A DNA stretch of 64,000 bases from Convolutriloba macropyga. Lineage: Eukaryota. The stretch covers positions 37,262,001 through 37,326,000 of the forward strand of contig NC_134474.1 of assembly GCF_964194025.1 (NCBI RefSeq). Direction: 5' to 3'. The translations under genes were made by a program, and so were the position numbers. Of this stretch, positions 16,582-64,000 are shown piece after piece (positions within the stretch are counted from its first letter, which is position 1; every line of letters begins with the position of its first letter). The notes beneath the pieces are model-generated. The model was not told the DNA's origin and ran no database searches. It saw only the letters and a program-made list of their open reading frames with translations.

Positions 16582-18890
16582 AAAACTCAATTGAACATTG
16601 TAACAAAATTGGGTACAAATGACTGGTTAGATAAATCACCCAGTGTGTCAACTCTCAGTAGAGCAAGAGTCTATTGTCATCTTCCGATAACTAGTGAGAT
16701 CAGACAAATATTTGAAATTCAAACAGGATCTCAAAAGTAATCAATAGTTCTCAAACAATTTAAAGGCGTCAGTTCTAATTTTGTTCACTCATTTATCAGA
16801 CAAGAGGTGTCAGAATACATCAGAGAACTTGATTTTAAATAAAACCTAATAAATCAGGATCAAAACAGCAGGTACAGCCGATCAACAATCAGATAGACAA
16901 CTAAGCTATAAGAAGGAAGCAAATAAATCCAGTGCCAAAAACTGAGTAACTCGGAGCAAGAACAATTTAAAGTTAATATTGAGGCGGAGTCTGCTATCTG
17001 CGTTACCTCTTACTTAACATAAACGAGAAATAAGTAATATGTAACTCCACAATAAATTAAAAACATCAAGTTTATATTGTTATTTCTCAGAGTTAAGTAT
17101 TGAAATTTGGATGTAAAACCAGAATCGTTTACAAAGATATTTGGGTCCACAGTCAGAGAGGGATAACTAACAAAGGACTCAGGACAAATCAACAAAAAAA
17201 ACAGTCATTATTAGAATTACAACAAAATCGATTTAGAGCCTACCTTGAGAATTTCACTGTCATTGAAAATTAAAAACGCAATTGAAAAAATGTCCTGAAA
17301 CATCAACTGAAACTAGGATTTAAACAATAACACCTCGTTCGAAAATGGTGACCAGCAAAACTCAATTCAACATTGTAACAAAATTGGGTACAAATGACTG
17401 GTTAGATAAATCACCCAGTTTGTCAACTCTCAGTAGAGCAAGAGTCTATTGTTATCGTCCGATAACTAGTGAGATCAGACAAATATTTGAAGTTCAAACA
17501 GGATCTCAAAAGTAATCAAAAGTTCTCAAAGTTTTAAGGCGTCAGTTCTAATTTTGTTCACTCATTTATCAGACAACAGGTGTCAGAATACATTACAGAA
17601 CTTGATTTTTAATAAAATCTAATAAATCAGGATCAAAACAGCAGGTACAGCCGATCAACAATCAGATAGACAGCTAAGCTATAAGAAGGAATCAATTACA
17701 TCCAGTGCCAAAAACTGAGTTACTCGGAGCAAGAACAATTTAAAGTTAATATTGAGGCGGAGTCTGCTATCTGCGTTACCTCTTACTTAACATAAACGAG
17801 AAATAAGTAATATGTAACTCCACAATAAATTAAAAACATCAAGTTTATATTGTTATTTCTCAGAGTTAAGTATTGAAATTTGGATGTAAAACCAGAATCG
17901 TTTACAAAGACATTTGGGTCCACACTCAGAGAGGGATAACTAACAAAGGACTCAGGACAAATCAACAAAAAAAACAGTCATTGTTAGAATTACAACAAAA
18001 TCGATTTAGAGCCTACCTTGAGAATTTCACTGTCATTGAAAATTAAAAACTCAATTGAAAAAATGTCCTGAAACATCAACTGAAACTAGGATTCAAACAA
18101 TAACACTTCGTTCGAAAAAGGTGACCAGCAAAACTCAATTCAACATTGTAACAAAATTGGGTACAAATGACTGCTTAGATAAATCACCCCGTTTGTCAAC
18201 TCTCAGTAGAGCAAGAGTCTAATGTTATCTTCCGATAACTAGTGAGATCAGACAAATATTTGAAGTTCAAACAGGATCTCAAAAGTAATCAAAAGTTCTC
18301 AAAGTTTTAAGGCGTCAGTTCTAATTTTGTTCACTCATTTATCAGACAACAGGTGTCAGAATACATTACAGAACTTGATTTTAAATAAAATCTAATAAAT
18401 CAGGATCAAACCAGCAGGTACAGCCGATCAACAATCAGATAGACAACTAAGCTATAAGAAGGAATCAATTACATCCAGTGCCAAAAACTGAATTACTCGG
18501 AGCAAGAACAATTTAAAGTTAATATTGAGGCCGAGTCTGCTATCTGCGTTACCTCTTACTTAACATAAACGAGAAATAAGTAATATGTAACTCCACAAAA
18601 AAAAATTAAAAACATCAAGTTTATATTGTTATTTCTCAGAGTTAAGTATTGAAATTTGGATGTAAAACCAACATTGTTTACAAAGATATTTGGGTCCACA
18701 GTCAGAGAGGGATAACTAACAAAGGACTCAGGACAAATCAACAAAATAACAGTGTCATCATTAGAATTACAACACAATCGATTTACAGCCCAGCTTGAGA
18801 ATCTCACAAAGTTAAAACAACTCAATTGCAAAAATGCCCTGAAACATCAACTGAAACTAGGATTCAAACCATAACACTTCGTTCGAAAAA
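16582..18890 (-). repeat. Tandem array, 773-bp unit x3; each unit has a Gm2791-type and a mutated snR38-type C/D snoRNA
   Basis: Identical landmarks at 17010/17783/18556. The units contain TCAGACAA(G/C)AGGTGTCAGAA and TCAGAGAGGGATAACT. Confidence 0.9.
16769..16823 (-). ncRNA. Box C/D snoRNA, Gm2791-type
   Basis: Minus strand: CTGATGT A TTCTGACACCTCTTG T CTGA ... ATGA ... CTGA. The 15-nt guide is complementary to LSU CAAGAGGUGUCAGAA. Confidence 0.7.
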
Positions 18891-21800
18891 AATACAACTA
18901 CAACTAAAATCGAGAAATTTAAGTCACACGAATCACAACAATAGAAAACAAATTGATCATAGGAAGGTTTAGATAGCGTCACCAAATCCGAAAGTTGTAA
19001 GAAATACCACCAAAAATTTTCCTGTCAAACAAGTAATATGACGAAAAACATTTCGCCTAACGAAGTGAAGCTAGAAGCCCAACCACAACCTAACCATTAA
19101 TTATATAATAGACCATGAACAACAATTTTCATACGGCAATTCAGTTTACATTTGAAAGCATCATCAAAAATCGGAAGAGGTGTCAGATATCATCCCGGCA
19201 ATATTTTGGCAAAATTGGTAAAAGAAAGGAGCAACGAACAATGAGAACAAAAACTCAAATTCAGATAAACTTAAAACGTCATTGTCAGTCAGAAGACCGT
19301 GGTGTCATAAAATTGCACAAACTTCATGCACAACATAAACGCACCATAGAAGCGAACAATTAAAAATTTTCCATTAAAACTGCTAAACCAATTGACATAC
19401 AAAAACTCTGAAGGATAGACTTCAAATGCCACCCATATATTCTACATTTTGAAGAATAAAAAATCTCCCAATTTTCATCAAAAGTTAAAACTTAAACATA
19501 TGAGCCCAATTTGCAATAAGCAGAGTCTGCTATCTGCGTTACCTCTCACTTAACATATACAAGAAATAATTAATATGTAACTCCACAAACATTAACTAAA
19601 ATTATCGCGTTTACAATCTAATTTATCAGAGTTAAATATTGAAATTTGGATGTAAAAGCAACGTCGTTTACAAAGAAATTTGGGTCCAGAATCAGAAAGG
19701 GATAACTAACAAAGGAATCAGGACAAATGAACAAAAAAACAGTGTCATTATTAGAACGACAACAAAACCGATTTACAGAATAGCTTGAGAATTTCACTAA
19801 GTCAAGAGAACATTCTAGAGAAAAATTTCAGAATTTCACTTGAAAATTGAAAACTCAATTAAAAAAATGTCCTGAAACATCAACTGAAACTCGGATTCAA
19901 ACCATAACACTTCGTTCGAGAAATATACAACTACAACTAAGTTTGAGAACTTTTAAGTCATACGACGCACATCAATGGAAAGAATGGACCATTATCGTCA
20001 ACAAAACCGGAGAGTTGTCAAAAAAACCAGAAAAGTTTTCCGTCTAAATTGTTTTAAGATGAATTAACAGTTCGCCTAACAAAGTGAAGCTAGGAGCACA
20101 ACTAAAACGTAACACTTGATTAAATAATCTGAAAAGGTGTCAGATAACATCACGGCAATATTTTGGCAAATTTTGATAAAAAAGAAAAACGAACAATGAG
20201 AACAAAAACTCAAATTCAGATGAATTTCAAGCGTCATTGTCAGTCAGAAGACCATCGAGAGTCATCGCATACAAGTACAAATTAAGCGCACACAAGAAAA
20301 GAGCAAGACTGCAATATTACAAAGATAAATCAGAAGGCAATAAAAAACATGAACTGCTAAGTTAGCCTTTTCATGGCAGCCGAGCATTATGACTCATAAG
20401 AATGTTCAAAATAATCGCAGATACTAGAATTCACCAGAGACAAATTCGTTTACAAACAAATTTGGTTCACACATCCGACAGGGATAACTAACGAAGGGAT
20501 TAGGTCAAATCAACAAAATAATACTGTCATCATTAGAATTACAATACAATCGATTTACAGCCGAGCTTGAGGAATTCACAGAGTCATTGAAAAATAAAAA
20601 CTCAATTGAAAAAAAGGCTTGAAACATCAACTGAAACTAGGATTCAAACCATAACACTTCGTTCGAGAAATATACAACCCAAACTAAGCTCGAGAAATTT
20701 AACTCATACGAATCACAACAATAGAAAACAAATTGATCGTTAGGAGGTTTAGATAGCGTCACTAAACCCGAAAAGTTTAGAAATACCACCAGTACAATTT
20801 CCTGTCGAACAAGTATGACGAAAAAGAATTCGTCCACCAAAAAGAAGCTAGAAGAACAATAACAATCTAACAATTGATTATATAGACCATGAACAACAAT
20901 TTTCATACGGCAATTCAGTTTACATTTGGCAACATCATAGAAAATCTGAAAAGGTGTCAGATATCACGGCAATATTTTGGCAAATTTAGTAAAAAAGGAG
21001 CAACGAACAATACGAAAAAAACTCAAATTCAGAAAATTTCAAGGCGTCACTGTCAGTCAGAAGACCGTCAAGAGTCATCACAAACAAGTACAATTTGAAC
21101 GCCACAAGAAAAGGGCAACACTTTAACATTACAAAGATAAATCTTATGGCAAAAGAAAACATTATCTGCTTTAACTCAGCCTAAGTTAGCCAAACTGTTT
21201 TTCATGGCAGCCGAGCATTCGAACTTAGAAGAATGTTCAAAACAATCGCAGATACTAGAATTGATTCTCAGTTACACTGCATTCACCAGAAACAAAGTTG
21301 TTTACAGACAAATTTGGGTTCACACATCAGACAGGGATAACTAACGAAGGGATCAGGTCAAATGAACAAAAAAACAGTGTCATCATTAGAATTACAACAC
21401 AATCGATTTACAGCCCAGCTTGAGAAAATCAAAGACATTCAAAATTAAAACCTTCAATTGAAAAAATGTCTTGAAACATCAACAGAAACTAGGATTCAAA
21501 CCATAACACTTCGTACGAGAAAAATACAATCACAACTAAGTTCGAGAAATTTAACTGACACGAATCACAGCAAAAGAAAACAAATTGATCATTAGAAGGT
21601 TTAGATAGCGTCACCAAAACCGAAAAGTTGTGAGAAATACCACCAGAACATATTCCTGTCGAACAAGTATTATGACGAAAAACAGCTCGTCTAACGAAGT
21701 GAAGTTAGAAGCACATCCACAACCTACCAATTGATTATATAATAGACCATGAACAACAATTTTCGTACGGCAATTTTCCATTTACATTTGAAAACATCAT

Positions 21801-24740
21801 CAAAAATCTGAAGAGGTGTCAGATATCACGGCAATATTTTGGCAAAGTTAGAAAAAAGGAGCAACGAACAATGCGAACAAAACTCAAATTCAGAAAATTT
21901 TAAAGCGTCACTGTCAGTCAGAAGACCGTCGAGAGTCATCACAAACAAGTACAAGTTGAACGCCACAAGAAACGAGCAACACTTTAACATTACAAAGATA
22001 AATCTTATGGCAAAATAAAACATTATCTGCTTTAACTCAACCTAAGTTAGCCAAACTGTTTTTCATGGCAGCCGAGCATTATAACTTAGAAGAATGTTCA
22101 AAATAATCGCAGATACTAGAAATGATTTTCAGTTACACTGCATTCACCAGAACAAAATCGTTTACAAACAAATTTGGGTTCACATATCAGACAGGGATAA
22201 CTAACGAAGGGATCAGGTCAAATCAACAAACAGTGTCATCACTAGAATTACAAAACAATTGGTTTACATTCCAGTTTGAGAATTTCACAAAGACACTCAA
22301 AATTAAAACCTCAAGAAAAAATGTCCCGAAACAACTGAAACTAGGATTCAAACCATAACTTTTCGATCGAGAAATATACAGCTACAACTAATTTCGAGAA
22401 ATTTAAGTCATAAGAATCACAACAATAGAAAATAAATTGATCATTAGAAGGTTTGATAGCTTTAAAAAATTCGAAAGTTGTAAGAAAAACCACCAGAACA
22501 TTTTACTGTCAAACAACTATTATGACGAAAAACATTTCGCCTAACGAAGTGCACCTAGAAGCACAACCACAACCTAGCCATTAATTATATAATAGACCAT
22601 GAACAACAATTTTTGTACGGCAATTTTCAGTTTACATTTGAAAACATCAAATATCTGAAGAGGTGTCAGATATCACGGCAATATTTTGGCGAAGTTAGAA
22701 AAAAGGAGCAACGAACAATGCGAACAAAACTCAAATTCAGAAAATTTTAAAGCGTCATTGTCAGTCAGAAGACCGTCGAGAGTCATCACAAACAATTAAA
22801 AGTTGAACGCCACAAGAAAAGAGCAACACTAACATTACAAAGATAAATCTTATGGCAAAAGAAAACATTATCTACTTTAACTCAGCCTAAGTTAGCCAAA
22901 CTGCTTTTCATGGCAGCCGAGCATTCGAACTTAGACGAATGTTCAAAACAATCGCAGATACTAGAATTGATTCAGAGTTACACTGCATTCACCAGAAACA
23001 AAGTCGTTTACAGACAAATTTGGGTTCACACATCAGACAGGGATAACTAACGAAGGGATCAGGTCAAATCAACAAACAGTGTCATCACTAGAATTACAAA
23101 ACAACCGATTTACATTCCAGTTTGAGAATTTTACAAAGACACTCAAATTTAAAACCTCAAGAAAAAATGTCTCGAACCAAGGATTCAAACCATAACTTTT
23201 CGATCGAGAAAAATACAACTACAACTAATTATGAGAAATTCAAGTCATAAGAATTACAACAATAGAAAATAAAATGATCATTAGAAGGTTTGATAGCTTC
23301 ACCAAATCCGAAAGTTGTAGGAAATACCACCAGAACAATTTACTGTCAAAAAAGTATTATGACAAAAAACATTTCGCCCAAAGGAGTGAAGCTAGAAGCA
23401 CAACCACAACATAACCATTAATTATATAATAGACCATGACCAACAATTTTCGTACGGCAATTCATTTTACATTTGAAAACATCACCAAAAATCTGAAGAG
23501 GTGTCAGATATCATCACGGCAAAGTTTTGACAAATTTGGAAAAGAAGCAACGAACAATGAGAACAAAAACTCAAACTCAGATAAATTTAAAGCGTCATTG
23601 TCAGTCAGAAGACCGTCGAGAGTCATCACAAACAAGTTCAAATTGAACGCACAAAAGAAAAGAGAAAGACTAACACTAAAAAGATAAATCATATGGCAGC
23701 ATAAAAGATGAACTGCTTTAACTCAGCCTAAGTTAGCCAAACTGTTTTTCAATGCAGCCGAGCATTATAAGTTAGAAGAATGTTCAAAATAATCGCAGAT
23801 ACTAGAATTGATTTTCAGTTCCACTGCATTCACAAGAAACAAATTCGTTTACAAACAAATTTGGGTTCACACATCAGACAGGGATAACTAACGAAGGGAT
23901 CAGGTCAAATCAGCAAAATAACGGTGTCATCATTAGAATTACAACACAATCGATTTACAGCCCAGCTTTAGAATTTCACAAAGTCATTGAAAATTAAAGA
24001 CTCAATTGAAAAGAAGTCCCGAAACATCAACTGAAACTAGGATTCAAACAATAACACATCGTTCGAAAAATATACAACTACAACTAAGTTCGAGAAATTT
24101 AAGTCATACGAATCACAACAATAGAAAACAAATTGAACATTAGAAGGTTTAGATAGCGTCAACAAATCCGAAAGTTGTAGGAAATACCACCAGAAAAATT
24201 TCCTAACGAACAAGTATTATGACGAAAAACAGCTCGTCTAACGAAGTGAAGCTAGAAGTACAACCACAACCTAACCATTGATTATATAATAGACCATAGA
24301 CAACAGCTTTCATACGGCAATTCAGTTTACATTTGAAAACATCATTGAAAATCTGAAGAGCTGTCAGATATTATCACGGCAAAGTTTTGACAAATTTGGA
24401 AAAGAAGGAGCAACAAACAATGAGAACAAAAACTTAAATTCAGATAAATTTAAAGCGTCATTGTCATTCAGAAGACCGTCGAGAATCATCACACACAAGT
24501 ACAAATTAAGTGCACACAAGAAAAGAGGGCAAGACTGTAAGATTACAAAGATAAATCTGAAGGCAATAAAAAACATGAACTGCTTTAACTCAGCCTAAGT
24601 TAGCCAAACTGTTTTTCACGGCAGCCGAGCATTATAACTCAGAAGAATGTTCAAAATAATTGCAGATACTAGAATTGATTTTCAGTTACACTCCATTCAG
24701 CAGAAACAAATTCGTTTACAAATAAATTTAGGTTCACACA

Positions 24741-24800
24741 TCAGACAGGGATAACTAACAAAGGGATCAGGTCAAATCAACAAAATAACAGTGTCATCAT
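24741..24800 (-). ncRNA. Box C/D snoRNA, snR38/SNORD1-like (LSU Gm2815 yeast numbering); representative copy of the 860-bp array
   Basis: Minus strand: box C ATGATGA ... internal CTGA (D') ... AGTTATCCCTGT-CTGA (box D). The 12-nt guide is complementary to LSU ACAGGGAUAACU, and D+5 pairs with the second G. Confidence 0.88.
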
Positions 24801-25189
24801 TAGAATTACAACACAATCGATTTACAGCTCAGCATGAGAATCTCACAAAGTCATTGAAAGTTAAAAAACTTAATTGCAAAAATGCCCGGAAACATCAACT
24901 GAAACTAGGATTCAAACCCTAAAACTTCGTTCGAGAAATATACAACCATAACTAAGTTAGAGAAATTTAACTCATACGAATCACAACAAAAGAAAACAAA
25001 TTAATCATTAGAAGGTTTAGATAGCGTCACCAAAGCCGAAAAATTAGGAGAAATACCCCCAGAACATATTCCTGTCGAACAAAATTATGACGAAAAACAG
25101 CTCGTCTAACGAAGTGAAGTTAGAAGCACAACAACAACCTACCAATTGATTATATAATAGACCATGAACAACAATTCTAATACGGCAAT

Positions 25190-25245
25190 TCAGTTTAGAT
25201 TTGAAAACATCATTGAAAATCTGAAGAGGTGTCAGATAACATCAC
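25190..25245 (-). ncRNA. Box C/D snoRNA, SNORD60/snR48-like (LSU Gm2793); representative copy
   Basis: Minus strand: GTGATGT (C variant) TA TCTGACACCTCT T CAGA (D') ... ATGATGT (C') ... CTGA (D). The guide is complementary to LSU AGAGGUGUCAGA. Confidence 0.8.
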
Positions 25246-25306
25246 GGCAAAGTTCTGTTAAATGAGGGAGCAACGAACACTGAGAACAAAAACAACACTG
25301 AGATTT

Positions 25307-25359
25307 TCAGATAATTTTAAAGCGTCATTGTCAGTCAGAAGACCGTCGAGAATCATCAC
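25307..25359 (-). ncRNA. Box C/D snoRNA, snR73/SNORD35-like (LSU Cm2959); representative copy
   Basis: Minus strand: GTGATGA (C) TTCTCGACGGTCT T CTGA (D') ... CAATGA (C'-like) ... CTGA (D). The guide matches LSU AGACCGUCGUGA at 11 of 12 positions. Confidence 0.8.
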
Positions 25360-28300
25360 ACACAAGTATAAATTAAGCGCACACAAGAAAAGAGCAAGAC
25401 TGTAAGATTACAAAGATAGATCCAAAGACAATATAAAACATGAACTGCTTTAACTCAGCCTTAGTTAGCCAAATTGTTTTTCATGGCAGCCGAGCATTAT
25501 AACTCAGAAGAATGTTCAAAATAATCGCAGAAACATGAATTGATTTTCAGTTACACTGCATTCACAAGAAACAAATTCGTTTACAAACAAATTTGGTTTC
25601 ACACATCCGACAGGGATAACTAACGAAGGGACCAGGTCAAATCAGCAAAATAACGGTGTCATCATTAGAATTACAATACAATCGATTTACAGCCCAGCTT
25701 TAGAATTTCACAAAGTCATTGAAAATTAAAGACTCAATTGAAAAGAAGTCCCGAAACATCAACTGAAACTAGGATTCAAACAATAACACATCGTTCGAAA
25801 AATATACAACTACAACTAAGTTCGAGAAATTTAAGTCATACGAATCACAACAATAGAAAACAAATTGAACATTAGAAGGTTTAGATAGCGTCACCAAAGC
25901 CAAAAAATAGGAGAAATACCACCAGAACATATTCCTGTCGAACAGAATTATGACGAAAAACAGCTCGTCTAACGAAGTGAAGTTAGAAGTACAACCACAA
26001 CCTAACCATTGATTATATAATAGACCATAAACAACAGCTTTCATACGGCAATTCAGTTTACATTTGAAAACATCATTGAAAATCTGAAGAGGTGACAGAT
26101 ATTATCACGGCAAAGTTTTGACAAATTTGGAAAAGAAGGAGCAACAAACAATGAGAACAAAAACTCAAATTCAGATAAATTTAAAGCGTCATTGTCATTC
26201 AGAAGACCGTCGAGAATCATCACACACAAGTACAAAATAAGCGCACACAAGAAAAGAGGGCAAGACTGTAAGATTAAAAAGATAAATCTGAAGGCAATAA
26301 AAAACATGAACTGCTTTAACTCAGCCTAAGTTAGCCAAACTCTTTTTCACGGCAGCCGAGCATTATAACTCAGAAGAATGTTCAAAATAATTGCAGATAC
26401 TAAAATTGATTTTCAGTTACACTGCATTCAGCAGAAACAAATTCGTTTACAAATAAATTTAGGTTCACACATCAGACAGGGATAACTAACAAAGGGATCA
26501 GGTCAAATCAACAAAATAACAGTGTCATCATTAGAATTACAACACAATCGATTTACAGCTCAGCATGAGAATCTCACAAAGTCATTAAAAGTTCAAAAAA
26601 AATCAATTGCAAAAATGCCCTGAAACATCAACTGAAACTAGGATTCAAACCATAACACTTCGTTCGAGAAATATACAACCACAACTAAGTTAGAGAAATT
26701 TAACTCATACGAATCACAACAAAAGAAAACAAATTAATCATTAGAAGGTTTAGATAGCGTCACCAAAGCCGAAAAAATAGGAGAAATACCCCCAGAACAT
26801 ATTCCTGTCGAACAAAATTATGACGAAAAACAGCTCGTCTAACGAAGTGAAGTTAGAAGCACAACAACAACCTACCAATTGATTATATAATAGACCATGA
26901 ACAACAATTCTAATACGGCAATTCAGTTTAGATTTGAAAACATCATTGAAAATCTGAAGAGGTGTCAGATAACATCACGGCAAAGTTCTGTTAAATGAGG
27001 GAGCAACGAACACTGAGAACAAAAACAACACTGAGATTTTCAGATAATTTTAAAGCGTCATTGTCAGTCAGAAGACCGTCGAGAATCATCACACACAAGT
27101 ATAAATTAAGCGCACACAAGAAAAAAAGAGCAAGACTGTAAGATTACAAAGATAAATCGGACGGCAATATAAAACATGCACTGCTTTAACTGGGCCTAAG
27201 TTAGCCAAACTGTTTTTCAAGGCAGCCGAGCATTATCACTTAGAAGAATGTTCAAAAAATAATCGCAGATACTAGAATTGGTTTTCAGTTACACTGCATT
27301 CAGCAGAAACAAACTCGTTTACAAACAAAATTGGGTTCACACATCAGACAGGGATAACTAACAAAGGGATCAGGTCAAATCAACAAAATAACAGTGTCAT
27401 CATTAGAATTACAACACAATCGATTTACAGCTCAGCATGAGAATCTCACAAAGTCATTGAAAGTTAAAAAACTCAATTGCAAAAATGCCCTGAAACATCA
27501 ACTGAAACTAGGATTCAAACCATAACACTTCGTTCGAGAAATATACAACCACAACTAAGTTAGAGAAATTTAACTCATACGAATCACAACAAAAGAAAAC
27601 AAATTAATCATTAGAAGGTTTAGATAGCGTCACCAAAGCCAAAAAATAGGAGAAATACCACCAGAACATATTCCTGTCGAACAGAATTATGACGAAAAAC
27701 AGCTCGTCTAACGAAGTGAAGTTAGAAGCACAACCACAACCTACCAATTGATTATATAATAGACCATGAAGAACAATTCTCATAGGTCAATTCAGTTTAG
27801 ATTTGAAAACATCATTGAAAATCTAAAGAGGTGTCAGATAACATCACGGCAAAGTTCTGGAAAATGAGGGAGCAACGAACACTGAGAACAAAAACTTAAA
27901 TTCAAATAATTTTAAAGCGTCATTGTCAGTCAGAAGACCGTCGAGAATCATCACACACAAGTATAAATTAAGCGCACACAAGAAAAAAGAGCAAGACTGT
28001 AAGATTACAAAGATAAATCGGACGGCAATATAAAACATGCACTGCTTTAACTGGGCCTAAGTTAGCCAAACTGTTTTTCAAGGCAGCCGAGCATTATAAC
28101 TTAGAAGAATGTTCAAAAAAAATAATCGCAGATACTAGAATTGATTTTCAGTTACACTGCATTCAGCAGAAACAAACTCGTTTACAAACAAAATTGGGTT
28201 CACACATCAGATAGGGATAACTAACGAAGGGATCAGGTCAAATCAACAAAAAAACACATTCATTATTAGAATTACAACACAATCAATTTACAGCCCAGCT

Positions 28301-40378: not shown

Positions 40379-40439
40379 AAAATTGTATAAATTTCATGCA
40401 CAAAATACATGCACTATAAAAGCGAATAATTAAAGTTTT

Positions 40440-47944: not shown

Positions 47945-48004
47945 TCAGACAGGGATAACTAATAAAGTAATCAAATCAAATCAACAAGGTGATATTGTCA
48001 TCAT
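47945..48004 (-). ncRNA. Box C/D snoRNA, snR38-type (older single copy)
   Basis: ATGATGA at 48004-47998 and AGTTATCCCTGT-CTGA ending at 47945. Confidence 0.78.
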
Positions 48005-48859: not shown

Positions 48860-48913
48860 TCAGAAAAATTTTACATCTTCAGGAAAAATCAGAAGACCGT
48901 CGTGTCTCATCAC
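48860..48913 (-). ncRNA. Box C/D snoRNA, snR73/U35-type
   Basis: GTGATGA GA CACGACGGTCT T CTGA ... AAGATG ... CTGA. Confidence 0.8.
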
Positions 48914-49191
48914 AAAACACAACCCTAACAAACTTAAAACTACAGCGATCAGATCGAAAACTTTGGAAGAGTGGTAACGATGTCGCTATTCATAAAAACT
49001 AAGTCAGATGAAATCTGAAGCGTCACTATTAACAGAAGACCGTCGTGACTGAAGTCAACCAGTCATATATTGAATGCAAATGAGTCCAAAGCGAACCAAT
49101 TGCTGATCTTGTTTGATATCTTATTTCACTAAGAATGGAGGAAAATAAAAAGCATATAGTTTGAAAGACTCGCGAAAAACTTGAGGCACAC

Positions 49192-49247
49192 TCAGTTTCA
49201 GTAATTTAACATCATTGATAATCTGAAGAGGTGTCAGGTATCATCAC
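49192..49247 (-). ncRNA. Box C/D snoRNA, U60-type with canonical box C
   Basis: GTGATGA TAC CTGACACCTCT T CAGA ttatca ATGATGT ... CTGA. Confidence 0.8.
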
Positions 49248-51763: not shown

Positions 51764-51818
51764 TCAGATACTCGCAGGTCGTCATTGCAAATCAGAAGAC
51801 CGTCGTGCTTTTCATCAT
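51764..51818 (-). ncRNA. Box C/D snoRNA, snR73/U35-type, intact singleton
   Basis: ATGATGA AAAG CACGACGGTCT T CTGA tttg CAATGA ... CTGA. Confidence 0.85.
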
Positions 51819-53009
51819 AACCGCTAACAGTAGGACCGAACTAAAGAGAGGGTCGCTGGTCACAAACAATACGAGCCAAATTTGACAAGACACCACTTTT
51901 ATCTCCATTTGCAATAGGAGCACGAAAACATCTTGGATAATTCACAAAAAAACCTTCCGAATGCAAGCAAAGTGAAATCATGATTAAAACGAGAGTAAAA
52001 AATCCAACATAAGAAAATGCAAACCAGATAAACACAAATTACAATAAGCTAACCGTCAAACAGCAATTATTCAAAACACTCAATCATTTCAGGAGCTGTT
52101 ACTGTTTTTATCATATGATGCTTATAAGAACAAAGTTTTAAGAGCGGGCATCTGAAATTGGGCTTTATGGATTTAAACCGTTTCTATTTTTAATTTCGTT
52201 CTTTTTATGAATCGGTTCATTTCAGATTGCTTTCATTAGCAACTGCTGCTTAAAAGTACTTTAGAGCCGAACAAGCAAAGAATGAAACTACCCCAGAAAA
52301 ATCAAATGCCGAAAAAGCGGCAAAATAAGGTAATGCGAAACAAATTTTTATTCGATTAAGTAAAAATTAAACAAAATAGGGCCGCTACAATAGATGGCTG
52401 TTAAGATGAGGGCGGATAGAAAAAAAAATCTGGCGAAATGCTCTCAATCTTTTAAGGTTTTAATTAGCGAAAATCAGACAGGGATAACTCATCAATCAGT
52501 AAACTTAGCTGGCAGATTGCCAGAAAAAAGCTGCAATAGCTTCGTAGATCTGCAGCCTCAAAAAAAAAACAATAAAAAAGACAGACCAAAAAAATTCGTC
52601 TTTTCAATGAAAGCTGATATGTTATATTTTGATTAAAAACCTGTATAAGTTCTTGCTGCCTCTCTCTATTAGCTGCTCTCGAATAACCTTCATTTAGAGT
52701 GACACACGCCCATATGACCTCATCTCTTTGAATTAAAGTAAATAAAAGTCAATTTCAAAGTGAGGAAGTCATTTCTGAGAGTGAGGTAAGTCAAGTGTGA
52801 CCAAAAACTTAATCACGCGCATGAACAAAAAAACTCGCTCCACTAAGAGTTAAAAATGATGTCACACATGCAATTCTGTTGAAATTGCATGAACGAATGA
52901 ACAAAAAGTGGCTGTGACGTCATATGGTCGTAACAAAAATCGTGACGACGAAACAAAAAACCAAGAGAAGGCCGGTAATAGCACCAGCTTTCCCTGTTCG
53001 GCTATTACA

Positions 53010-55255
53010 AATCATTTACCAGTCAAGTCATCATCACCACAACTCTCTACTCAAAAACGAAAGTGAGCTCTTTACACCATGAAACCTCAAACATAAACAT
53101 CAATCTAGAAAGCTTATCTCAGTAGCCTTAAAATTTAAGCAAGAATCAGACAGGGATAACTCATCAATCAGTAAAATCATTTACCAGTAAAGTCATCATC
53201 ATTACAACTCAGTTCTCAAAAAGAAAGTGAGCTCTTTACACCATGAAAACTCAAACATCAATCTAGAAAGCTTATTTCAGTAGCCTTAAAATTTAAACAA
53301 GAATCAGACAGGGATAACTCATCAATCAGTAAAAATCATTTACCAGTAAAGTCATCATCATCATCATCGCAACTCTCTACTCAAAAAAGAAAGCGAGCTC
53401 TTTACACCACGAAAACTCTAACATCAATCTAGAAAGCTTATTTCAGTAGCCTTAAAATTTAAACAAGAATCAGACAGGGATAACTAATCAATCAGTAAAA
53501 ATCATTTACCAGCAAAGTCATCATCATTACAACTCTCTACTCAAAAAAGAAAGTGAGCTCTTTACATCATGAAACCTCAAACATCAATCTAGAAAACTTA
53601 TTTCAGAAGCCTTAAAATTTAAACAGGAGTCAGACAGGGATAACTCATCAATCAGTAAAAATCATTTACCAGTAAAGTCATCATCATCATCATCGCAACT
53701 CTCTACTCAAAAAAGAAAGCGGGCTCTTTACACCATGAAACCTCAAACACCAATCTAGAAAGCTTACTTCAGCAGCCTTAAAATTTAAGCAAGAATCAGA
53801 CAGGGATAACTCATCAATCAGTAAAAATCATTTACCAATAAAAGTAATCATCATCGCAACTCTCTACTCAAAAAAGAAAGCGAGCTCTTTACACCATGAA
53901 ACCTCAAACATCAATCTAGAAAGCTTATTTCAGCAGCCTTAAAAATTAAGCAAGAATCAGACAGGGATAACTCATCAATCAGTAAAAAACATTTACCATT
54001 AAAAGTAATCATCATCACAACTCTCTACTCAAAAAAGAAAGTGAGCTCTTTACACAATGAAACCTCAAACATCAATCTAGAAAGCTTATTTCAGTAGCCT
54101 TAAAATTTAAACAAGAATCAGACAGGGATAACTAATCAATCAGTAAAAATCATTTACCAGCAAAGTCATCATCATCACAACTCCTGTACTCAAAAACGAA
54201 AGTGAGCTCTTTACACCATGAAACCTCAAATTTCAATCTAGAAAACTTATTTCAGTAGCCTTAAAATTTAAACAAGAATCAGACAGGGATAACTCATCAA
54301 TCAGTAAAACTCATTTACCAGTAAAGTATCATCATTAAAACTCTCTACTCAAAAAAGAAAGTGAGCTCTTTACATCATGAAACCTCAAACATCAATCTAG
54401 AAAGCTTATTTCAGAAGCCTTAAAATTTAAACAGGAATCAGACAGGGATAACTCATCAATCAGTAAAAATCATTTACCAGTAAAGTCATCATCATCATCA
54501 TCGCAACTCTCTACTCAAAAAAGAAAGCGAGCTCTTTACACCATGAAACCTCAAACATCAATCTAGAAAGCTTATTTCAGCAGCCTTAAAATTTAAGCCA
54601 GAATCAGACAGGGATAACTCATCAATCAGTAAAAATCATTTACCAGTAAAAGTAATCATCATCGCAACTCTCTTCTCAAAAAAGAAAGCGAGCTCTTTAC
54701 AGCATGAAACCTCAAACATCAATCTAGAAAGCTTATTCCAGCAGCCTTAAAATTTAAGCAAGAATCAGACAGGGATAACTCATCAATCAGTAAAAATCAT
54801 TTACCAGTAAAAGTAATCATCATCACAACTCTCTACTCAAAAAAGAAAGTGAGCTCTTTACACCATGAAACCTCAAACATCAATCTAGAAAGCTTATTTC
54901 AGTAGCCTTAAAATTTAAACAAGAATCAGACAGGGATAACTGATCTATCAGTGAAAGTCATTTACCAGTACAGTCATCATCACAACTCTCAACAGAGGAT
55001 AGTTTAACTCTACACGATCGAACCTCGACATATAATTAAAACTGAAACAAGAATGAGAACTGGATAACTCAAAAATAATTAAAAATCATTTACCAGCACA
55101 GTCACCATCGCTACTCAATTAGGGAGAAACCTCAGTCCTAACTCAATTAAATCATCAGCAGAACTTAATTCAGAAGCCTTAAACTCAAACGAAAATCAGA
55201 CAGGGATAACACATAAATCAGTAAAAAATCGTTAACCATCGCAGTCATCATAATC
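53010..55255 (-). repeat. Tandem array, ~160-bp unit x12 plus 2 diverged units; each unit is one snR38-type snoRNA
   Basis: TCAGACAGGGATAACT at 53146, 53304, 53470, 53630, 53796, 53957, 54118, 54279, 54438, 54604, 54765, 54926 and 55196. Confidence 0.95.
53304..53358 (-). ncRNA. Box C/D snoRNA, snR38/SNORD1-like; representative copy of the 160-bp array
   Basis: All four boxes are canonical: ATGATGA (C) ... CTGA (D') T TGATGA (C', overlapping the guide by 1 nt) GTTATCCCTGT CTGA (D). Confidence 0.92.
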
Positions 55256-57295
55256 CTATACAGAAACAAAAATTAAGAGCTATTAATAATTCAACGTTTA
55301 CCAATAAATTTATCTGTTGCCTTTTCTGCGCAATTTCAAGCTTTAAAATTAAATTTCTGCAATCAAAGGTCTCGAAATAATTCACACGCGGTGAATTTTT
55401 ACGATAACAATCATTGCAACCACAAATTTTCATTAAGAAAAATTAACCCTAATGAACATAAAAGGTTTTTAGTGGCACTCTCAAAACAAGTAAACAACCA
55501 AGATTCGACACAAACTTACTTTTGAGTCAAAAGCTGGAAACCAAGAATCTTAATAGAGAACAACATTCGACTGAAACATATCACACACAACCAACCGTAT
55601 TCAAAACTCGGGCAGGCATAAAGGATAATTACCATCATCGCAAAAAAGTTCGAGCTATGTCAATTAGGAAAATTTTGAGAAGTTAGGTCAGCAAGGAGTT
55701 TCACGCCCTTTTTATTCAATCAATTAATTTACAGAAAAAAAACTAACAAAGTTTCTACTGTGGAAGAAATTCAAGCAATGAGGAGACCCAAAACCGAAGA
55801 GACTAGGAGGCGACCACTCCTGAAATGACCACTCTCAAACCTTAAGACGCGTAAATTCTCATATGTGATAATATGTAACATATTCTCATACAACATAAAT
55901 GCGAGGTAACCAAACACCAAAAAGACATGAAAAATAAATAGTCTTAGAGTGATCCGCACTAAATTGAAAGAAACAGAAATTGTTCTGCACCCTCCAAGTT
56001 TTGAGGCGCGGAAGGGGAAAATTGATAGTAAAATTAAATAGACAATCGATTTGTTCAAAGATTTCTAAGCTAAAAAAACATGCAATTTGTTTGTTAAAAT
56101 ATTTGATTTTTTAACTTTCGACTGACCGTTCAAAACGTCACTGATTGCTGCGTCGAGTACGTGACAAAAAAGAGAGTTACAAAAACATTTTCAACGAATT
56201 GGCTGGTCCTGAAATTTAAAACATAACAGACTAACGTGGGCGAATTGCTCTCAAACAACCCCTGAGCGCTTGGCTTCGCCAGTAGATAGCCAAGGTTTAA
56301 TAAGACTAGCTTTAGCTTAATTGAAGGGGCGTGAGGTGAGCGCAGCGGGGGGTGGGGGTGCAACGGTGGGAGTGGAGTCTTTGGCTGCTCGGGGAGCACA
56401 TACAATTTGACTTGAAAAAAAAAAAAAGAGTTCAACATCTCAGACATTTGGGATCTTCAATCATGAAATCTTTTGACCGGCAATAATTTATGAACAAACG
56501 AGCAAAAAAGAACAGTTCTGAGTTGTCTTAGGCCACCCTCGCTCATTGAGTGATGCGCACTAATCTGATAGACACAGAAACTATTCTCTACCACGCTCAC
56601 CTTCGAGTCGTGCCCATAGAAGGGAAGAACTTAAAAGCAGGCTCAATTCGCCTGCAAAAGAATACATAATGTTAAAAAACAGGCAAAAGAATTGCTCAAA
56701 GTTATGATGTGTTGTCTGTTGAGAAATATTTCACGTAAAATAGAGTTACATATAAGATGACAAACAATTCAACGATCAAAACGAATAATGGCGTGCATGA
56801 TTGTGTAACATGACAATCTGTTTAAAAAATTAAAATAAATCTAAGCCGTTGACGGAAACCGACTTGATACATTCAAAAGTTCTAGAGCTCCAATCTACAG
56901 CTTCAGGCGGCGAAATTTTATTCAGAGGACTGTATTTTTGGGATAGGGGTGAAGTGGGGGGAGGGTGTCAAACTTTAAGAACCGCCCTGCACCTCATGAT
57001 TGTACGCATCCCAAAACAGTCTCTGTGAATCGCATACATGGAGACAAGTGAGCTGAATGGCTCTAAGATAACTTAATGCCCTTCGGGCGCTACCTGTTTA
57101 TCCCATTTTTGAGGACCATAAGTCAAATGGGTCAGACAAAAAATCGGTCACGCGAAAAATCGCATATAAAAAGTCCAATGGGACTAATATAATTGCTACA
57201 AACTTCGTTTGAGTGCAATTAAATGCTGTAACTTGATGCGTTCAACTGACCCAAATTTGACAAAACCTAATTCTAATTTTTTTGAATTTTACCGC

Positions 57296-57371: not shown

Positions 57372-57974
57372 GTGAGATCACAAGACACATTTTTCTCTTT
57401 CAGCTTAATTCGAATTCCAAAAAAATACGTTTATATTTATATCCTATTTTAAAACGTGGATCAAAACATCAATCAGCCAATCAGAAAACAGTATTAAAAT
57501 TTTCCCAGCAATAAAATATCTATATTTTGTACGTCTGCCGTTTTCACTAGCTCAGTTGCATCAATCCACAAACAGTGCCGTACATCATCGTTAAAATCGT
57601 CATATCAGAAGACTATTTTCGAGTCAAATCTGTACTTCCTGAATGATGTCAATCAGAAACATTTATAGCACACAATCCACCAGAAATCAACAATTGAGGA
57701 ATCAATAGAGAAAATCTTTTCAAAGCAAATTGAATTCAGATAACAACCGGCCTCATTTACGTGAGAAGACCGTGGTCCAACAAACTCATTAATAACAGGT
57801 CATTATTAAATAACCCCCAAAATTTATTAAATGCACAATTATTTTCCTTACTCAACACAGTAAAACCTAATGATCTACAGCTGACTCGCATGACAACGGC
57901 GCAATCATACTTTAAATTCCCGTTAAATTCTTCAACGAATCATGTAACTGTAAGAAGATTCACAGCACAAAAGG

Positions 57975-58032
57975 TCAGACAGGGATAACTCGCAATCACA
58001 CAGAATCAATCAATTTCCAAAGGTGTCATCAT
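57975..58032 (-). ncRNA. Box C/D snoRNA, snR38-type singleton
   Basis: ATGATGA at 58032-58026 and AGTTATCCCTGT-CTGA ending at 57975, in otherwise unrelated flanks. Confidence 0.8.
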
Positions 58033-58409
58033 TTAGATACACAAAGATTCATATCGAATTTTTCTCCTAATGGTTGCATATGATGATCTATGATGAATAT
58101 ATGTACGCTCCTATTATGCTATATAAAACGTTTAGTGGTTAATAAGACATTACAAACTTGTCCATTCTAAGACGAGGTTGAACTAAGCATGGGCCACTCC
58201 TTCACACCAGGAATTTATGTCTCCTCAACAGTTTTAGTGAATCGCATACTTAGAGACTAGTAACCATGACCAAAGACGTTGTAATCTAAATTTAAAATAT
58301 ATGTCAGGAAATCAGAAGACCGTTGTGTGAATCAAGTCTCAGCTCCTGGGAAGAACAACTTGAATATTTTGAATGACATGGACTAGAACAGTTACCAGGT
58401 GACATAAAA

Positions 58410-58463
58410 TCAGACAGGGATAACTTCGCAATCAAAGATAATCTTTTCTAACAGCGTCATCAT
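58410..58463 (-). ncRNA. Box C/D snoRNA, snR38-type singleton
   Basis: ATGATGA at 58463-58457 and AGTTATCCCTGT-CTGA ending at 58410. Confidence 0.8.
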
Positions 58464-60528
58464 TTCGTAAAGGTAATCATAATATGCATAAACAATCTTC
58501 TACCAACAACAGAGTCGACTATAGCACCATTTATTTAGCAGATTAAACCAAAAATAGCCGAAAATAGCCACCGTTGACGCGCCTGAAGCCCATCGTGATC
58601 GAAACATAAAAAAAGGAAGAGAGAAAATGACAGATTTTTTCCTAAAGTGTTTAATTCGGTGTGCAGTTTTAGTTAGATTCTCAAACTATACTTATTTCAG
58701 CATCTACACTGAAAGCTATTAAGCTTATTACAAATGATAGCTAGCAATGGCTCAAACGAACTTGGGTAATCTAAAGCACTGACTTAATGAACGGGCTTTA
58801 TCGTTTTATCCCGTTTTTGATTCTACTCTTTTGACACGGACCATATTCACTAGATTGCCCAATTCATTGAGTGAAAGCATTTTAAAAATACATTCGGTTG
58901 AAACAGTGAGTGAAGTAAGTCAAGAGTCAAACATGAAAATCGTGACTTTTGTAACGACAAACGTGATCAAAAGGTAAAGCAAATTTAGATGTAACAGAAG
59001 AGGTCCCGAAATACAATCCAAAGAAGTGAATGCAAAACATTTAACTACTGTATCTGACCAGCGGATGAAAATAAAAATGCCAGCCAAAAAGACAGAGTCT
59101 CAAAAGTGGTGAAACTAAAATAATCCAACTAAATGAACAAAAATATAAATATTTCTAAAGCTTCTGAAGCTCTAATAACCCACCCACAAGCCCTGAAAGG
59201 GGTTAATTAGCCACTAAAGCTACAAAAACTCCGAAAAAAACTGAAAAAACTAAAAAAAAAATTAATATATATTTACAAATTTCGCGAAATTGATATGTTC
59301 AAAACAATTTTTGTCTTTAGAATCTGTGCAGGAAGCCACCTGCCAGACCTAAAAAAAAGTCATTGGCCCTTAAAAACCAATAAACTCAGAAAATGACTTA
59401 AAAAATTTTTAAAAAAATGGCAAATTTTGTTGAAAAGTTTAAACTTTAAAATTCGTAAAATCTTAATATCTTCAGAACCATTTCATTGTCGCTAGTAATC
59501 CAATTTTAAGCTCAGAAAATTTTGAGTGGCCTAGAAAGATTGACAAATCCGAAATAGGATGAAAAATTTTCATCAGAAAATTTGAAAGAATTTTCACATT
59601 TATCAAATTTAAAAAATTTGTGATATTAAAAATTGAAAACCATTCCATTGCACCTATCAAATGTAATAATAACTGTTAAAACATTCTAAAAACTTCGAAA
59701 AAAAGCGAAAAAATAGTATCATTTTTCTTGTTTATGTTCGGAGTACGAAAACATATAGCTCATAAATGGTCACAAAAAGTACCTATATCTTGTTTGAAAA
59801 AGCTTTATCAACTTTGACAAACGTCAATTCAAGACTAATTGACAAAAATGACAAAAAAACGTAGAAAATTGCACTCTATGAGCAAAACAATTTTTTACAA
59901 AATCCAAATAACCGACTAATATTGGACGAATTGCACTTGAACAGCGCAAGGGCGCTCAATTCTATTGCAGCCTGCTTCAGACCTTTTTTGATTGATAGAG
60001 AAAATTTTTTCTGATGCAATATATAAGCTTGCAAGAGATCTATTCCCTAATTCCACAAAACATAATTGTTTTGTTCTACAAAAAAACAACAAAACAAATC
60101 AAAACCAAATTCGGCAGTTGAGCGTTAAAAATACCAGACAAAACAGAACGTCAAATAGATGTACTGATGGCACTTGACGCATATTAACAACAAAATTCTT
60201 CGTTTTGAGCAGCTGATATTGACAATTAAATGATTTTCGGTACTAATAGTGGCAAAAACCCGTGATCAATTTAAAGCAGTAAAGATTCCGATGCTCTTCG
60301 CACCAAAAATTGGGGATGTGCGATCATCGCCCATAGCAAAAAGTGACAGACTAGATAACGACAACTAAAAACAAAATTATAAACTCATAACGACAACTGA
60401 AAACAAAATTATAAAATCAAAACTAAAATTATTTACAAAAAATTAACATAGCTGACAGAATTTTAGAATGCCAGAAAAAATCCGCAACGGCTTCGCAGAT
60501 CTGCAGTCTCAAAAAATAGTAAATATTA

Positions 60529-60580
60529 TCAGTAGCTGCGTTATTTTCATGTTCATCAAACAAGAGGTATCAGACATCAT
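60529..60580 (-). ncRNA. Box C/D snoRNA-like, Gm2791-type variant (also 61993-62046 and 63539-63592)
   Basis: ATGATGT (last T shared with the guide) CTGATACCTCTTG T TTGA (D') ... ATGA ... CTGA. The guide pairs with CAAGAGGUGUCAGA with one G-U wobble. Confidence 0.65.
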
Positions 60581-60826
60581 AGCAGACAGAAGAAAATACC
60601 CAAATTGATTGTTATCCAATAAAACACGTACAATTACTTTTCGGACTGAAGACAACAATAAAATACAACTGTAAACCACTTGAAACATTTGAAGTATAGA
60701 GGTATTTACGTGGATGAAGGGATTTACATGATTTGAAAGGATGAAGACATTTACAACATTGCTCTATGACGCGCCACTACTTCAAGGATTATCCCGAAGA
60801 ACAGACTGCCAGATTTCCCCTTTTGC

Positions 60827-61269
60827 CACCGGCAAAAGTAAGTCAACCCCCTAGTTTTACGAAAACTATTTTTAAAGCAATATTACTTCACCTTAAAATT
60901 ACATTTTGAAACCAATTTTTACACCATTGATCCCCTGCACTAGTACTCTAGCCTACCTATGAAATTCAGATAAAACACAACGTTCACCTACCAGAAATCC
61001 CAATAAAAAATATGAAAACATATCACATCTTGTCACAACCTTCTGTTTGCTGTAATACTTTGATGGAGTTCCTCGACTTTACATTGGGATCTCTGGTAAG
61101 TGAATGTTGCGTTTTATCTAAATTTCATAGGTAGGCGAGAATTTAAGGGATCAATGTTGTCTGAAAAATGTTTTAAAATTATTTAAAAATGTGATTTTAA
61201 ATTGAAGTACAAATGCCTCAAAAAATTTTACTTCGTGAAAATAGGGAGTGCTACCTTATTTTGGCAGTT
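60827..61269. mobile_element. Foldback MITE-like element inside the 1.5-kb unit (also 62267-62822, and 63815 to window end)
   Basis: Long imperfect inverted arms, e.g. GCCTACCTATGAAATTCAGATAAAAC / GTTTTATCTAAATTTCATAGGTAGGC. Ends are CACCGGCAAAAGTAAG ... CTTACTTTTGCAG (right end clearest in the second copy). Confidence 0.75.
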
Positions 61270-64000
61270 CAGTACACCAACGAAGCACGGGACGCAAAGA
61301 AAATCAGAAAGCGCAGAATTAGATTCCAGAGGCAGAAATCAACACTTCAAACAATTTTAACATTTTAAAACATTCATTATGTCGATATCTTTTGAAGACT
61401 ATAAACTTCTCACATAAACAAAATAGAACAGTTCTGAATAGTCTTCATTTTAGGCCACCCTCGCTCATTGAGTGATGAGCACTAACCAGACAGAAACAAA
61501 CTTCTCTACCACGGTCACAATCGACACGTCTCAATGGAAGGGAAGACCTAAAAAGTAGGCCTTAAATGGCCTGGAATAGAAGACCTTAAAGGTTATACAG
61601 AAGACAAAGAACTCCTCGTTGTTTTTGTGTTTTGTCAGCACAGGTGTTGGCAAATAGTTCATGACAAGTAGATGCACAAAACAGACAATAAAATGAACAA
61701 GATATGGAATCGTACGCGTGGTTATGTACCATATATAGCCAACTTGAGCGAAACAAGTACACTCAAAATCAGCCGAACATTGTAAATCTAGTTGTCAAAT
61801 CTACCGTTTCAGAGGTAACGTTTAAAAGACGTAGGGATGAAGGTAATGAATGTGCAACAGGCAATCTCAACCACCGTACGAATTAATGAGCTCTGGTAGT
61901 AACATCTTTTTCTTGACGAGAGATACAAATCAGACCAAGTTCTAGATCTTCTTTAATCAGAATCTAAATTTTGTTGACCTAAAGTTCAGATATCAGTAAC
62001 TGCGTTGTATTTTCATGTTAATCAAACAAGAGGTATCTGACATCATTGCAGCCAGAAAAAAATACCAAAATTGATTGGTGTCCACTAAAACACGTATAAT
62101 TACTTTTCGAACTGAAGATAACAAAAAAACACAACTAAACCACTTCAAAGGCTTGAAGTATAAAGGGACAGCCTTAAGGACAGTAAGACAATTACAACAA
62201 CGCTTTACGACGCGCCACTACGTCAAAAGTTATCCAGAAAAACCGACTGCTGGATTTCCTTTTTACCACCGCCAAATGTAAGTTAACACCCCCAAGTTTT
62301 ACGAAGTAAAAACTATTTTTTAAGGCAAAATTACTTCAGCTCAAACTCACATTTTGAAACCAAATTTTACACCATTGATTCATTACACTAGTACACCCAC
62401 CTTCCTGTAAAAATCAGATAAATCACAACGTTCACCAACCAGAAATCCCTATGTAAAATTGAGGAACTCCATGTTTTACAGTAAACAGAAAGTTGTCACA
62501 AGATCCTATGTAATCACATTTTTCTCTAATATTTAACAAACTTAGCCATAGTTGAAAAGATTTGTAAACATATCACATCTTGTGACAACTTTCTGTTTAC
62601 TGTAATACTTTGATGGAGTTCAACGACTTTTCATTGGGATCTCTGGTGAGCGAATGTTGCATTTTCTCTAATTTTCAAAGGTAGGCGAGAGTGTAAGGGA
62701 TCAATGTTGTTTAAATTTTTTAAAATGATTTGAAAATCTGAGTTAAAGTTGAAATACAATTGCCTCAAAAAATAGAAATTTTACTTCGTGAAAATAGGGG
62801 GTGCTATCTTACTTTTGCAGTTCAGCACACCAACAAAGCATGAGACGCAAAGAAGATCAAAAGAAGCAGACTTAGATTCAAAAAGGAGAAATCAACACCT
62901 CAGACAATTTTAACATGCCGAAAACATGTCGAAACAATTTTAAACATGTCGAAATCTTTTGCACACTATAAACTTCTCACATAAAAAATAGAACAGTTCT
63001 GAACCGTCTTCGCCCTCGCTCATTGAAAGATGAGCACTAATCAGACAGAAACAGAAACTAATCTCTACAACGGTCACAATCGACACGTCTCCATGGAACA
63101 GAAGACCTAAAACGTAGGCTTTAAATGGCCTGGAGTGGAAGGCCTAAAGCTTAGCCAAAAGATTTCCTGGTAATTTCTGTGTTTTCTCATCACAGGTGTT
63201 GGCAAATAGTTCAGGACAAGTAGATGCACAAAACAGACAAAAGCAACAAGATATGGAATCGAAAGCGTAGTTATGTATCATATATAGTCAACTTGGACCA
63301 AAAAAAGGACACTCAAAAACAGCCGGACATTGTAAATCTAGTTGTCAAATCTACCCTTTCAGAGGTAATTTTCAAAAGACATACGGATGAAAATAATGAA
63401 TGTGCAACAGGCAATTTCAACCACCATACGAACTTATCAGCTCTAGTAACATATTCTCAGGACGAGAGATACTAATCATACCAAGTTCTAGATCGTCTAA
63501 AATCACAATCTAATTTTTGTTGATAAAAAGTTCAGATATCAGTAACTTCATTGTATTTTCATGTTAATCAAACAAGAGGTATCAGACATCATAGCAGCCA
63601 GAATAAAATACCCAAATTGATTGGTTTCCAATAAAACACGTACAATTGATTTTCGAACTGAACATAACAAGAAAATACAACTGTTAACCACTTGAAACGT
63701 TTGAAGTATGAAGGGACAGCCTTAAGGACAGTAAGACAATTAAAACATCGCTTTACGACGCGCAATTACGTCAAGAGTTATTCAGAAAAACAGACTGCTA
63801 GATTTCCCTTTTACCACCGGCAAATGTAAGTTAACACCCCTAGTTTTACGAAGTAAAAACTATTTTTTAAGGCAAAATTATTTTACCTTAAACTCACATT
63901 TTGAAACCAATTTTTACACTACTGATTCACTACACTAGTACACCCACCTTCCAATTAAAATCAGATAAATCACAACGTTCACCTACCAGAAATCCCAATG

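Follow-up and report, generated by a model that had tools for sequence, protein, structure and literature searches.

What are the satellite-like repeats found in this stretch of the Convolutriloba macropyga genome? The stretch analyzed, referred to below as the window, comprises 64,000 nucleotides of contig NC_134474.1 (positions 37,262,001 to 37,326,000 of the forward strand) and does not contain a single N. From 16.0 to 64.0 kb, it is very probably a cluster, running in one direction, of tandemly amplified genes for small nucleolar RNAs (snoRNAs) of the box C/D class, together with decayed copies, and this cluster probably reaches past the window end (64.0 kb). Four ancient guide families would be represented, namely snR38/SNORD1, U35/snR73, U60/SNORD60 and snoR1/snR48; their members are called below snR38-, U35-, U60- and Gm2791-type copies, respectively.

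The copies were counted by means of the guide words that they carry on the plus strand of the window. The snR38-type word matched 49 times with at most one mismatch and 50 times with at most two, the U35-type word 32 and 34 times, and the U60-type word 29 and 31 times; the Gm2791-type word was found 5 times as a 20-nt word and 8 times as a 19-nt word, with at most two mismatches in both cases. This gives a total of 123 guide-word copies (50 + 34 + 31 + 8); the expectation derived from dinucleotide-preserving shuffles was 0.00-0.02 matches per word. These numbers agree closely with the manual counts of the original prediction (about 50, 34, 30 and 9). As it had also proposed, all the copies point the same way: the minus strand is the sense strand for 123/123 copies across 47 kb, and a single stray U35 word, with 2 mismatches, was found on the opposite strand. 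Self-comparison recovered the five announced tandem families of differing unit length (units of ~773, ~860, ~922, 161 and ~1548 bp) as well as the isolated copies; roughly 25 copies lie outside the tandem families, at 16.05, 38.5-40.4, 47.3-49.6, 51.8, 52.5, 55.2 and 57.7-58.5 kb. Neither protein genes nor transposon open reading frames (ORFs), nor any other ORF of note, were found in 16.5-64 kb, and a search for further box C/D species among the remaining RUGAUGA words of the cluster yielded no convincing unit. The families and the other copy-bearing segments are distributed as follows:

16570-18889, minus strand: ~773-bp tandem family, 3 copies, each with one Gm2791-type (snoR1/snR48-like) and one snR38-type unit
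18890-38366, minus strand: ~860-bp tandem family, ~22 copies, units 82-95% identical to the reference unit
38500-40430, minus strand: non-tandem segment, paralogous to 47.3-48.9 kb
40432-45159, minus strand: ~922-bp tandem family, 5 copies, 96-99.5% identity
47300-49650, minus strand: single-copy segment with one Gm2791-type copy (decayed), two intact snR38-type, three U35-type and three U60-type copies
51764-51818, minus strand: lone, fully canonical U35/snR73-type gene, flanks unrelated, its large-subunit rRNA (LSU) target matched by 11-12 contiguous pairs
52470-52505, minus strand: truncated snR38-type copy, cut upstream of the D'/C' part, a dispersed repeat starting at the expected box C position
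53006-54993, minus strand: 161-bp minisatellite, 12 copies, the monomer being one intact snR38-type gene plus ~100 nt of spacer
55196-55271, minus strand: isolated snR38-type copy, boxes intact, one change at the far (5') guide end
57735-58485, minus strand: pair of intact snR38-type genes whose guides lie at 57975 and 58410, flanks unrelated, a decayed U35-type unit coming after each
60542-64000, running off the window, minus strand: ~1548-bp tandem family, ~2.3 copies, decayed Gm2791-type units (guide GAUACC, D' UUGA)

Read along the minus strand, the ~860-bp unit is composed of a U60-type gene, a ~390-nt spacer, an snR38-type gene, a ~240-nt spacer, a U35-type gene and a ~60-nt spacer; compared in pairs, the units show a mean identity of 0.90. 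In the ~773-bp family, box C is weakened (AUAAUGA, GUAAUGU) or the guide is changed in most units. In the ~922-bp family, the U60-type guide reads CCUCGU and the U35-type box C is GUGGUGA. Each 161-bp monomer contains box C, D' CUGA, C' UGAUGA, the guide and box D. Outside the tandem families, the 38500-40430 segment holds two Gm2791-type copies (the intact one at 39884-39938), two snR38-type copies (39260 and 39546) and one U35-type copy (40354), and in the 47300-49650 segment one U35-type gene is intact (48889) and two of the three U60-type copies are decayed.

The anatomy of the units is illustrated by three representative copies:

30782-30841, minus strand: intact snR38-type gene (AUGAUGA, ~22 nt, CUGA, 10 nt, 12-nt guide, CUGA)
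28765-28817, minus strand: intact U35/snR73-type gene (GUGAUGA, D' CUGA, C' AAUGACG, terminal CUGA; 53 nt)
28655-28710, minus strand: U60-type gene (GUGAUGU, D' CAGA, C' AAUGAUG, terminal CUGA)

In the snR38 type, AUGAUGA is followed by ~22 nt, D' CUGA, ~10 nt, the 12-nt guide and D CUGA; the ~10-nt stretch after D' holds C' UGAUGA in the 161-bp family. In the U35 type, GUGAUGA and 4 nt precede a guide ending in D' CUGA, after which come C' AAUGACG, 12 nt and CUGA. The U60 type consists of GUGAUGU, a guide ending in D' CAGA, C' AAUGAUG, 14 nt and CUGA, and the Gm2791 type of GUGAUGU, a guide ending in D' CUGA, C' AUGAGUG and CUGA. In intact copies, the distance from box C to box D is 50-61 nt, very near the 50-62 nt cores that had been predicted on the minus strand. 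By the standards of animal box C/D snoRNAs, this is a short span. An exact RUGAUGA box C is present in 31/50 snR38-type and 17/34 U35-type copies, and the GUGAUGU box C of the U60 and Gm2791 types retains the UGAU core.

The spacer upstream of the other D-type box varies between lineages and matches no conserved rRNA; the units were therefore treated as single-guide RNAs. An extended snR38 form that reaches a downstream CUGG/CUGA, as suggested by the Rfam snoR38 alignment, was considered and rejected, because this downstream box is missing in most lineages, unlike the upstream box C, which is common across them. Directly after the snR38 D box (unit consensus 562-600, for example 30745-30781 on the minus strand), a block GRACCCAAAU...UUGUAAACGA is conserved in the 860-, 773- and 922-bp families. 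In the 860-bp family it can fold into a ~10-bp hairpin. The other lineages lack this block, which may act as a processing signal.

In order to place the guides on rRNA, 120 eukaryotic LSU loci were retrieved from metagenomes with a 36-nt conserved word, and the following pairings refer to these sequences. The complement of the snR38 guide was present in 120/120 loci. In 79/87 loci, the C opposite position 5 of the U35 guide lay 144 nt downstream of the G opposite position 5 of the snR38 guide, and inside the same conserved word the snR38 target was preceded by those of U60, 22 nt upstream, and Gm2791, 24 nt upstream. The predicted targets are thus separated by offsets of 2, 22 and 144 nt, which are those of yeast Gm2791, Gm2793, Gm2815 and Cm2959. 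In yeast, Gm2793 and Gm2791 are guided by snR48, Gm2815 by snR38 and Cm2959 by snR73 (PMC5199042), and the orthology of these guides between plants, human and yeast has been tabulated (PMC3511168). The snR38-type duplex comprises 12-15 contiguous pairs, that of the lone U35-type genes 11-12, and those of the U60 and Gm2791 types at least 13. The match to LSU ends at the 12-nt guide, which is bounded by CUGA. From these pairings, the nucleotide 5 positions upstream of D or D' is predicted to face the equivalents of yeast G2815, C2959, G2793 and G2791. The earlier assignment of the guide words to conserved LSU domain V, with these four positions given by the D+5 rule, was thus borne out.

Comparison with Rfam was carried out by scans in E-value mode, from which the sub-threshold matches described here originate; the best families were the expected, orthologous ones. 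For the snR38 type, the top family was snoR38 (RF00213), with up to 29.2 bits for a gathering threshold of 45; Plasmodium snoR09 (RF01586), whose layout is the same, with the guide at box D, was also matched. The U35 type gave snoZ161_228 (RF00328, U35 clan CL00056; 21.2 for a threshold of 45) and also plasmodium_snoR20 (RF01596), and the U60 type gave SNORD60 (RF00271; 22.8 bits for 42). The top family of the Gm2791 type was snoR1 (RF00345, grouped with SNORD60 in clan CL00066; 20.1 bits for 49), the 16-nt consensus guide of which is identical to the Gm2791-type guide. The families snoR38, snoR09, SNORD60, snoR1, snoZ161_228 and plasmodium_snoR20 share their guide words, box order and predicted sites with the copies of the cluster. 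However, the latter score 18-29 bits against gathering thresholds of 42-50, are 20-35 nt shorter than the models and appear to lack their terminal stem. Weak matches to archaeal, Giardia and Plasmodium families can be explained by this compactness. Homology to the snoR38, SNORD60, snoR1 and U35-clan families is indicated by guide identity and not by a score threshold.

Traces of selection were sought in two ways. First, since the copies had been found by guide and D box alone, box C could serve as evidence independent of the search. In at least 7 lineages with spacers and flanks that cannot be aligned, an exact RUGAUGA is found 31-38 nt upstream of the snR38 guide, for a chance of ~0.002 per lineage of finding it at that position, and RUGAUGA words in the cluster number 83 on the sense strand vs 7 on the antisense strand. 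Then, variation was measured over 21 contiguous units of the 860-bp array, which were taken regardless of their content and are consequently free of ascertainment bias. Nucleotide diversity (pi) was 0.027 in the three guide-plus-box blocks vs 0.131 for the whole unit (block-permutation p = 6e-5), the guide blocks being ~5x less variable than the remainder of the array. The 161-bp array consists of 12 monomers, every one of them intact, with 90-98% identity. Selection is visible in the low variation of the guide blocks and in the retention of box C in unrelated flanks. Between the U60- and snR38-type genes, the 390-nt spacer (unit consensus 114-500) contains no recognizable RNA gene, and its identity is ~79-85% when the 48-kb segment and the 860-, 922- and 773-bp families are compared. 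An exon or a processing element might be hidden there, or the similarity could simply reflect a recent common origin.

Four sequencing runs (two samples, one study) gave flat depth and half-depth variants on 47.3-52.6 kb, from which it follows that they are runs of genomic DNA. The interval 47.3-52.0 kb was reproduced at single-copy depth by these independent reads. In 4/4 runs, from both samples, a contig joins 47632 to 48064 with CTG between, revealing an allele deleted for 47633-48063. This allele is present at about half the local depth in both samples and lacks two intact snR38-type genes; the cluster therefore varies in copy number. The repeat that occupies the expected box C site of the 52.5-kb snR38 copy is a dispersed one: its summed contig depth reaches ~300x the single-copy level at 52079-52255 and ~3000x at ~52505-52565, and it carries short hairpins (CTGGCA-ATC-TGCCAG). 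A word related to it is found at 60490-60506. Furthermore, 10% of the 31-mers sampled from the 860-bp array (28600-31300) recur in a run of a second organism, so that part of the 860-bp unit is nearly identical in a relative.

How might such a cluster work? Transcription of the minus strand would yield long non-coding precursors, one or a few in number, on whose box C/D pairs snoRNP proteins of the fibrillarin type would assemble, and nucleases would trim the spacers to leave RNAs of ~55-65 nt. The released RNAs, of which each unit would supply one working guide, would direct 2'-O-methylation at the equivalents of yeast G2815, C2959, G2793 and G2791. The arrays would have expanded by unequal crossing-over and segmental duplication, selection keeping the guides in many copies while single copies decay. 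No upstream motif shared by 17 lineage representatives was found, no k-mer emerging beyond AT-rich words; together with the lack of protein ORFs, this fits processing from a long precursor. The genes are separated by spacers of 60-400 nt, and the sense (minus) strand is T-rich across the cluster. From the missing upstream motif and ORFs, the strict co-orientation and the T-rich sense strand, we infer that the copies are cut from long minus-strand precursors. Taken as a whole, an amplified four-guide cluster with long precursors, trimmed guides and selection is the explanation that we favor, and we regard it as likely; it also seems reasonably probable that a substantial share of the copies is both expressed and functional.

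Several observations weigh against this explanation. The original prediction spoke of about 120 gene copies; this number holds for the 123 guide words, but only 59 of them are intact on every part, that is, possess a box C core (UGAU), an adjacent D or D' box, a terminal CUGA and a perfect guide (snR38 31/50, U35 18/34, U60 8/31, Gm2791 2/8). Box C is deleted in 5/5 snR38-type copies of the 922-bp family, so that the youngest array amplified copies which had already lost it; in other defective copies, box C has undergone G-to-A changes, or a D/D' box is altered or missing. In the array U35-type copies, the LSU duplex is reduced to 9 contiguous pairs, a mismatch and 3 more pairs. When the flanks of representative copies were viewed by eye, no 4-5-bp terminal stem adjoining the boxes was seen, and no Rfam family reached its gathering score. 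It had been anticipated that boxes and guides would be better conserved than the flanking sequence. This is true of the guides in the 860-bp array and of box C, which is kept in unrelated flanks, but in that same array the conservation of boxes C and D does not exceed that of the spacer (box C pi of 0.11-0.26 for the snR38 and U60 types). Finally, the whole unit, including the 390-nt spacer, is kept at ~79% between families.

Much of this would be expected if the arrays were mostly dead satellite, an amplified piece of a snoRNA locus now decaying, the working guides coming from a few singletons or from elsewhere in the genome. The 64/123 defective copies and the unremarkable conservation of the 860-bp boxes are in line with it, as is the 390-nt U60-snR38 spacer, which, although non-coding, is as conserved between families as the genes. 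The 922-bp snR38 copies devoid of box C nevertheless keep a perfect guide, so amplification needs no function, and the half-depth allele deletes two intact snR38 genes, so single copies are dispensable. What argues against a dead satellite is that the guide blocks are the least variable part of an array whose units diverge by ~10%, that the 161-bp array consists of intact monomers (12/12), and that intact copies persist in unrelated flanks; we consider it rather unlikely. Chance matches, antisense rDNA fragments or an assembly artefact, with no snoRNA gene at all, might be suspected from the silence of Rfam at gathering thresholds and from the fact that just 26-30% of the sampled 860-bp array words were found in the independent runs. 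Yet shuffled sequences give practically no match, the LSU complementarity stops at the limits of a 12-nt guide bounded by CUGA, box C lies at a fixed distance, and 47.3-52.0 kb is reproduced by independent DNA; this possibility is hardly credible.

Another reading concerns the way in which the RNAs would be produced. The cluster could be a repeated non-coding host gene in the style of SNORD115/116 in SNHG14, with small exons in each repeat and snoRNAs released from spliced introns. The source is an animal, and intronic snoRNAs are the rule in animals (PMC6562600); all copies are co-oriented, the sense strand is T-rich, as introns often are, and GTAAGT-like and pyrimidine-tract-AG words occur in the spacers. 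However, these candidate splice words are not conserved across families, only ~60 nt separate the U35- and U60-type genes, and in the 161-bp unit an exon with its splice signals would have to fit into ~100 nt. Because of this 60-nt spacing and of the 161-bp monomers, an unspliced polycistron is favored over one snoRNA per intron, and the host gene is retained as a possible, though not a probable, alternative.

These results have several consequences. Repeat masking and Rfam thresholds both miss the locus, and routine annotation would call it satellite and report four conserved guides as absent or rare. If the arrays are expressed, as favored here, an animal example of tandem polycistronic snoRNA organization would be at hand, with guides for a functionally central part of LSU. 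It becomes testable whether the methylation of particular rRNA sites is limited by snoRNA gene dose, and how a multi-copy RNA gene, whose guides are kept while the boxes decay copy by copy, is shaped jointly by selection and concerted evolution; the deletion allele without two intact copies offers natural copy-number variation to work with. A bolder view, which we put forward as a tentative and rather doubtful one, is that the four guides moved from a one-per-intron arrangement to a 'snoRNA factory' that resembles a satellite and is more than 47 kb long. Dozens of active 55-65-nt copies would then be released from unspliced precursors, providing an extra dose for four neighboring positions of LSU domain V, and copy number varying between individuals could tune ribosome methylation.

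Some other elements of the window deserve mention. An exon-like ORF at 1019-1384 on the minus strand matches Pfam CutC (E = 2e-11) and is a predicted copper-homeostasis CutC homologue, located downstream of the cluster on the same strand. Minisatellites of 30-32 bp, built around the words GATCAGAC and TTCGAGCGCA, occupy 1629-3230 in opposite orientations (1629-2539 vs 3014-3230). At 15300-15760, just past the last decayed snR38 copy (16050), inverted copies of a ~150-nt element resembling a miniature inverted-repeat transposable element carry words (for example CTACGAGTTTATCA and CGATAAAAGAG) that are present on both strands. The plus strand shows an AT skew of 0.16-0.32 (A over T) in 4000-10000 and 16000-64000, and none in 10-16 kb; the T-richness of the minus strand may be the mark of a transcription unit that continues past the cluster. 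Finally, the 1548-bp repeat contains a long imperfect hairpin at 60926-61155 on the plus strand, the arms of which (60947-61009 and 61078-61140) are 87% complementary. It gave a sub-threshold match to MIR7723 (43 bits for a threshold of 200) and is probably a palindromic repeat rather than a microRNA.

To what known systems can this cluster be compared? Short and highly demanded genes such as those of 5S rRNA, U1/U2 small nuclear RNA and the histones are arranged in head-to-tail arrays which undergo concerted evolution and look like satellites. Unlike those repeats, in which each unit has its promoter, no per-unit promoter could be recognized here. For canonical rRNA-guide snoRNAs, no report of tandem or satellite-like arrays in animals was found in the literature, the coverage of which was incomplete; a search on snoRNA clusters of Drosophila brought nothing further.

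The SNORD115/116 and SNORD113/114 arrays have been called the only two known mammalian snoRNA gene clusters (PMC2766290). Like these arrays (SNHG14 and DLK1-DIO3, respectively), the present cluster belongs to an animal and contains tens of tandem, co-oriented box C/D copies with copy-specific decay. The mammalian arrays lie within a long non-coding transcription unit, are imprinted and brain-specific, and encode orphan guides, one per host intron, in ~2-kb units. In contrast, the guides found here are ancient rRNA guides, with as many as three in an 860-bp unit, or one every 161 bp.

Polycistronic snoRNA clusters also exist in Euglena and plants. Those of trypanosomatids are both polycistronic and tandemly repeated (PMC6562600). 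Unlike the clusters of these three groups, the one described here, a putative polycistron, is found in an animal, comprises only four guide species, all directed at one 169-nt stretch of LSU domain V, and has a far higher copy number (123 in 47 kb), half of the copies being decayed. It nevertheless resembles them in its co-oriented guide genes spaced 60-400 nt apart, with neither a protein-coding host nor a recognizable promoter for each gene, in the canonical rRNA sites to which the guides are predicted to be directed, and in the head-to-tail repetition of whole clusters.

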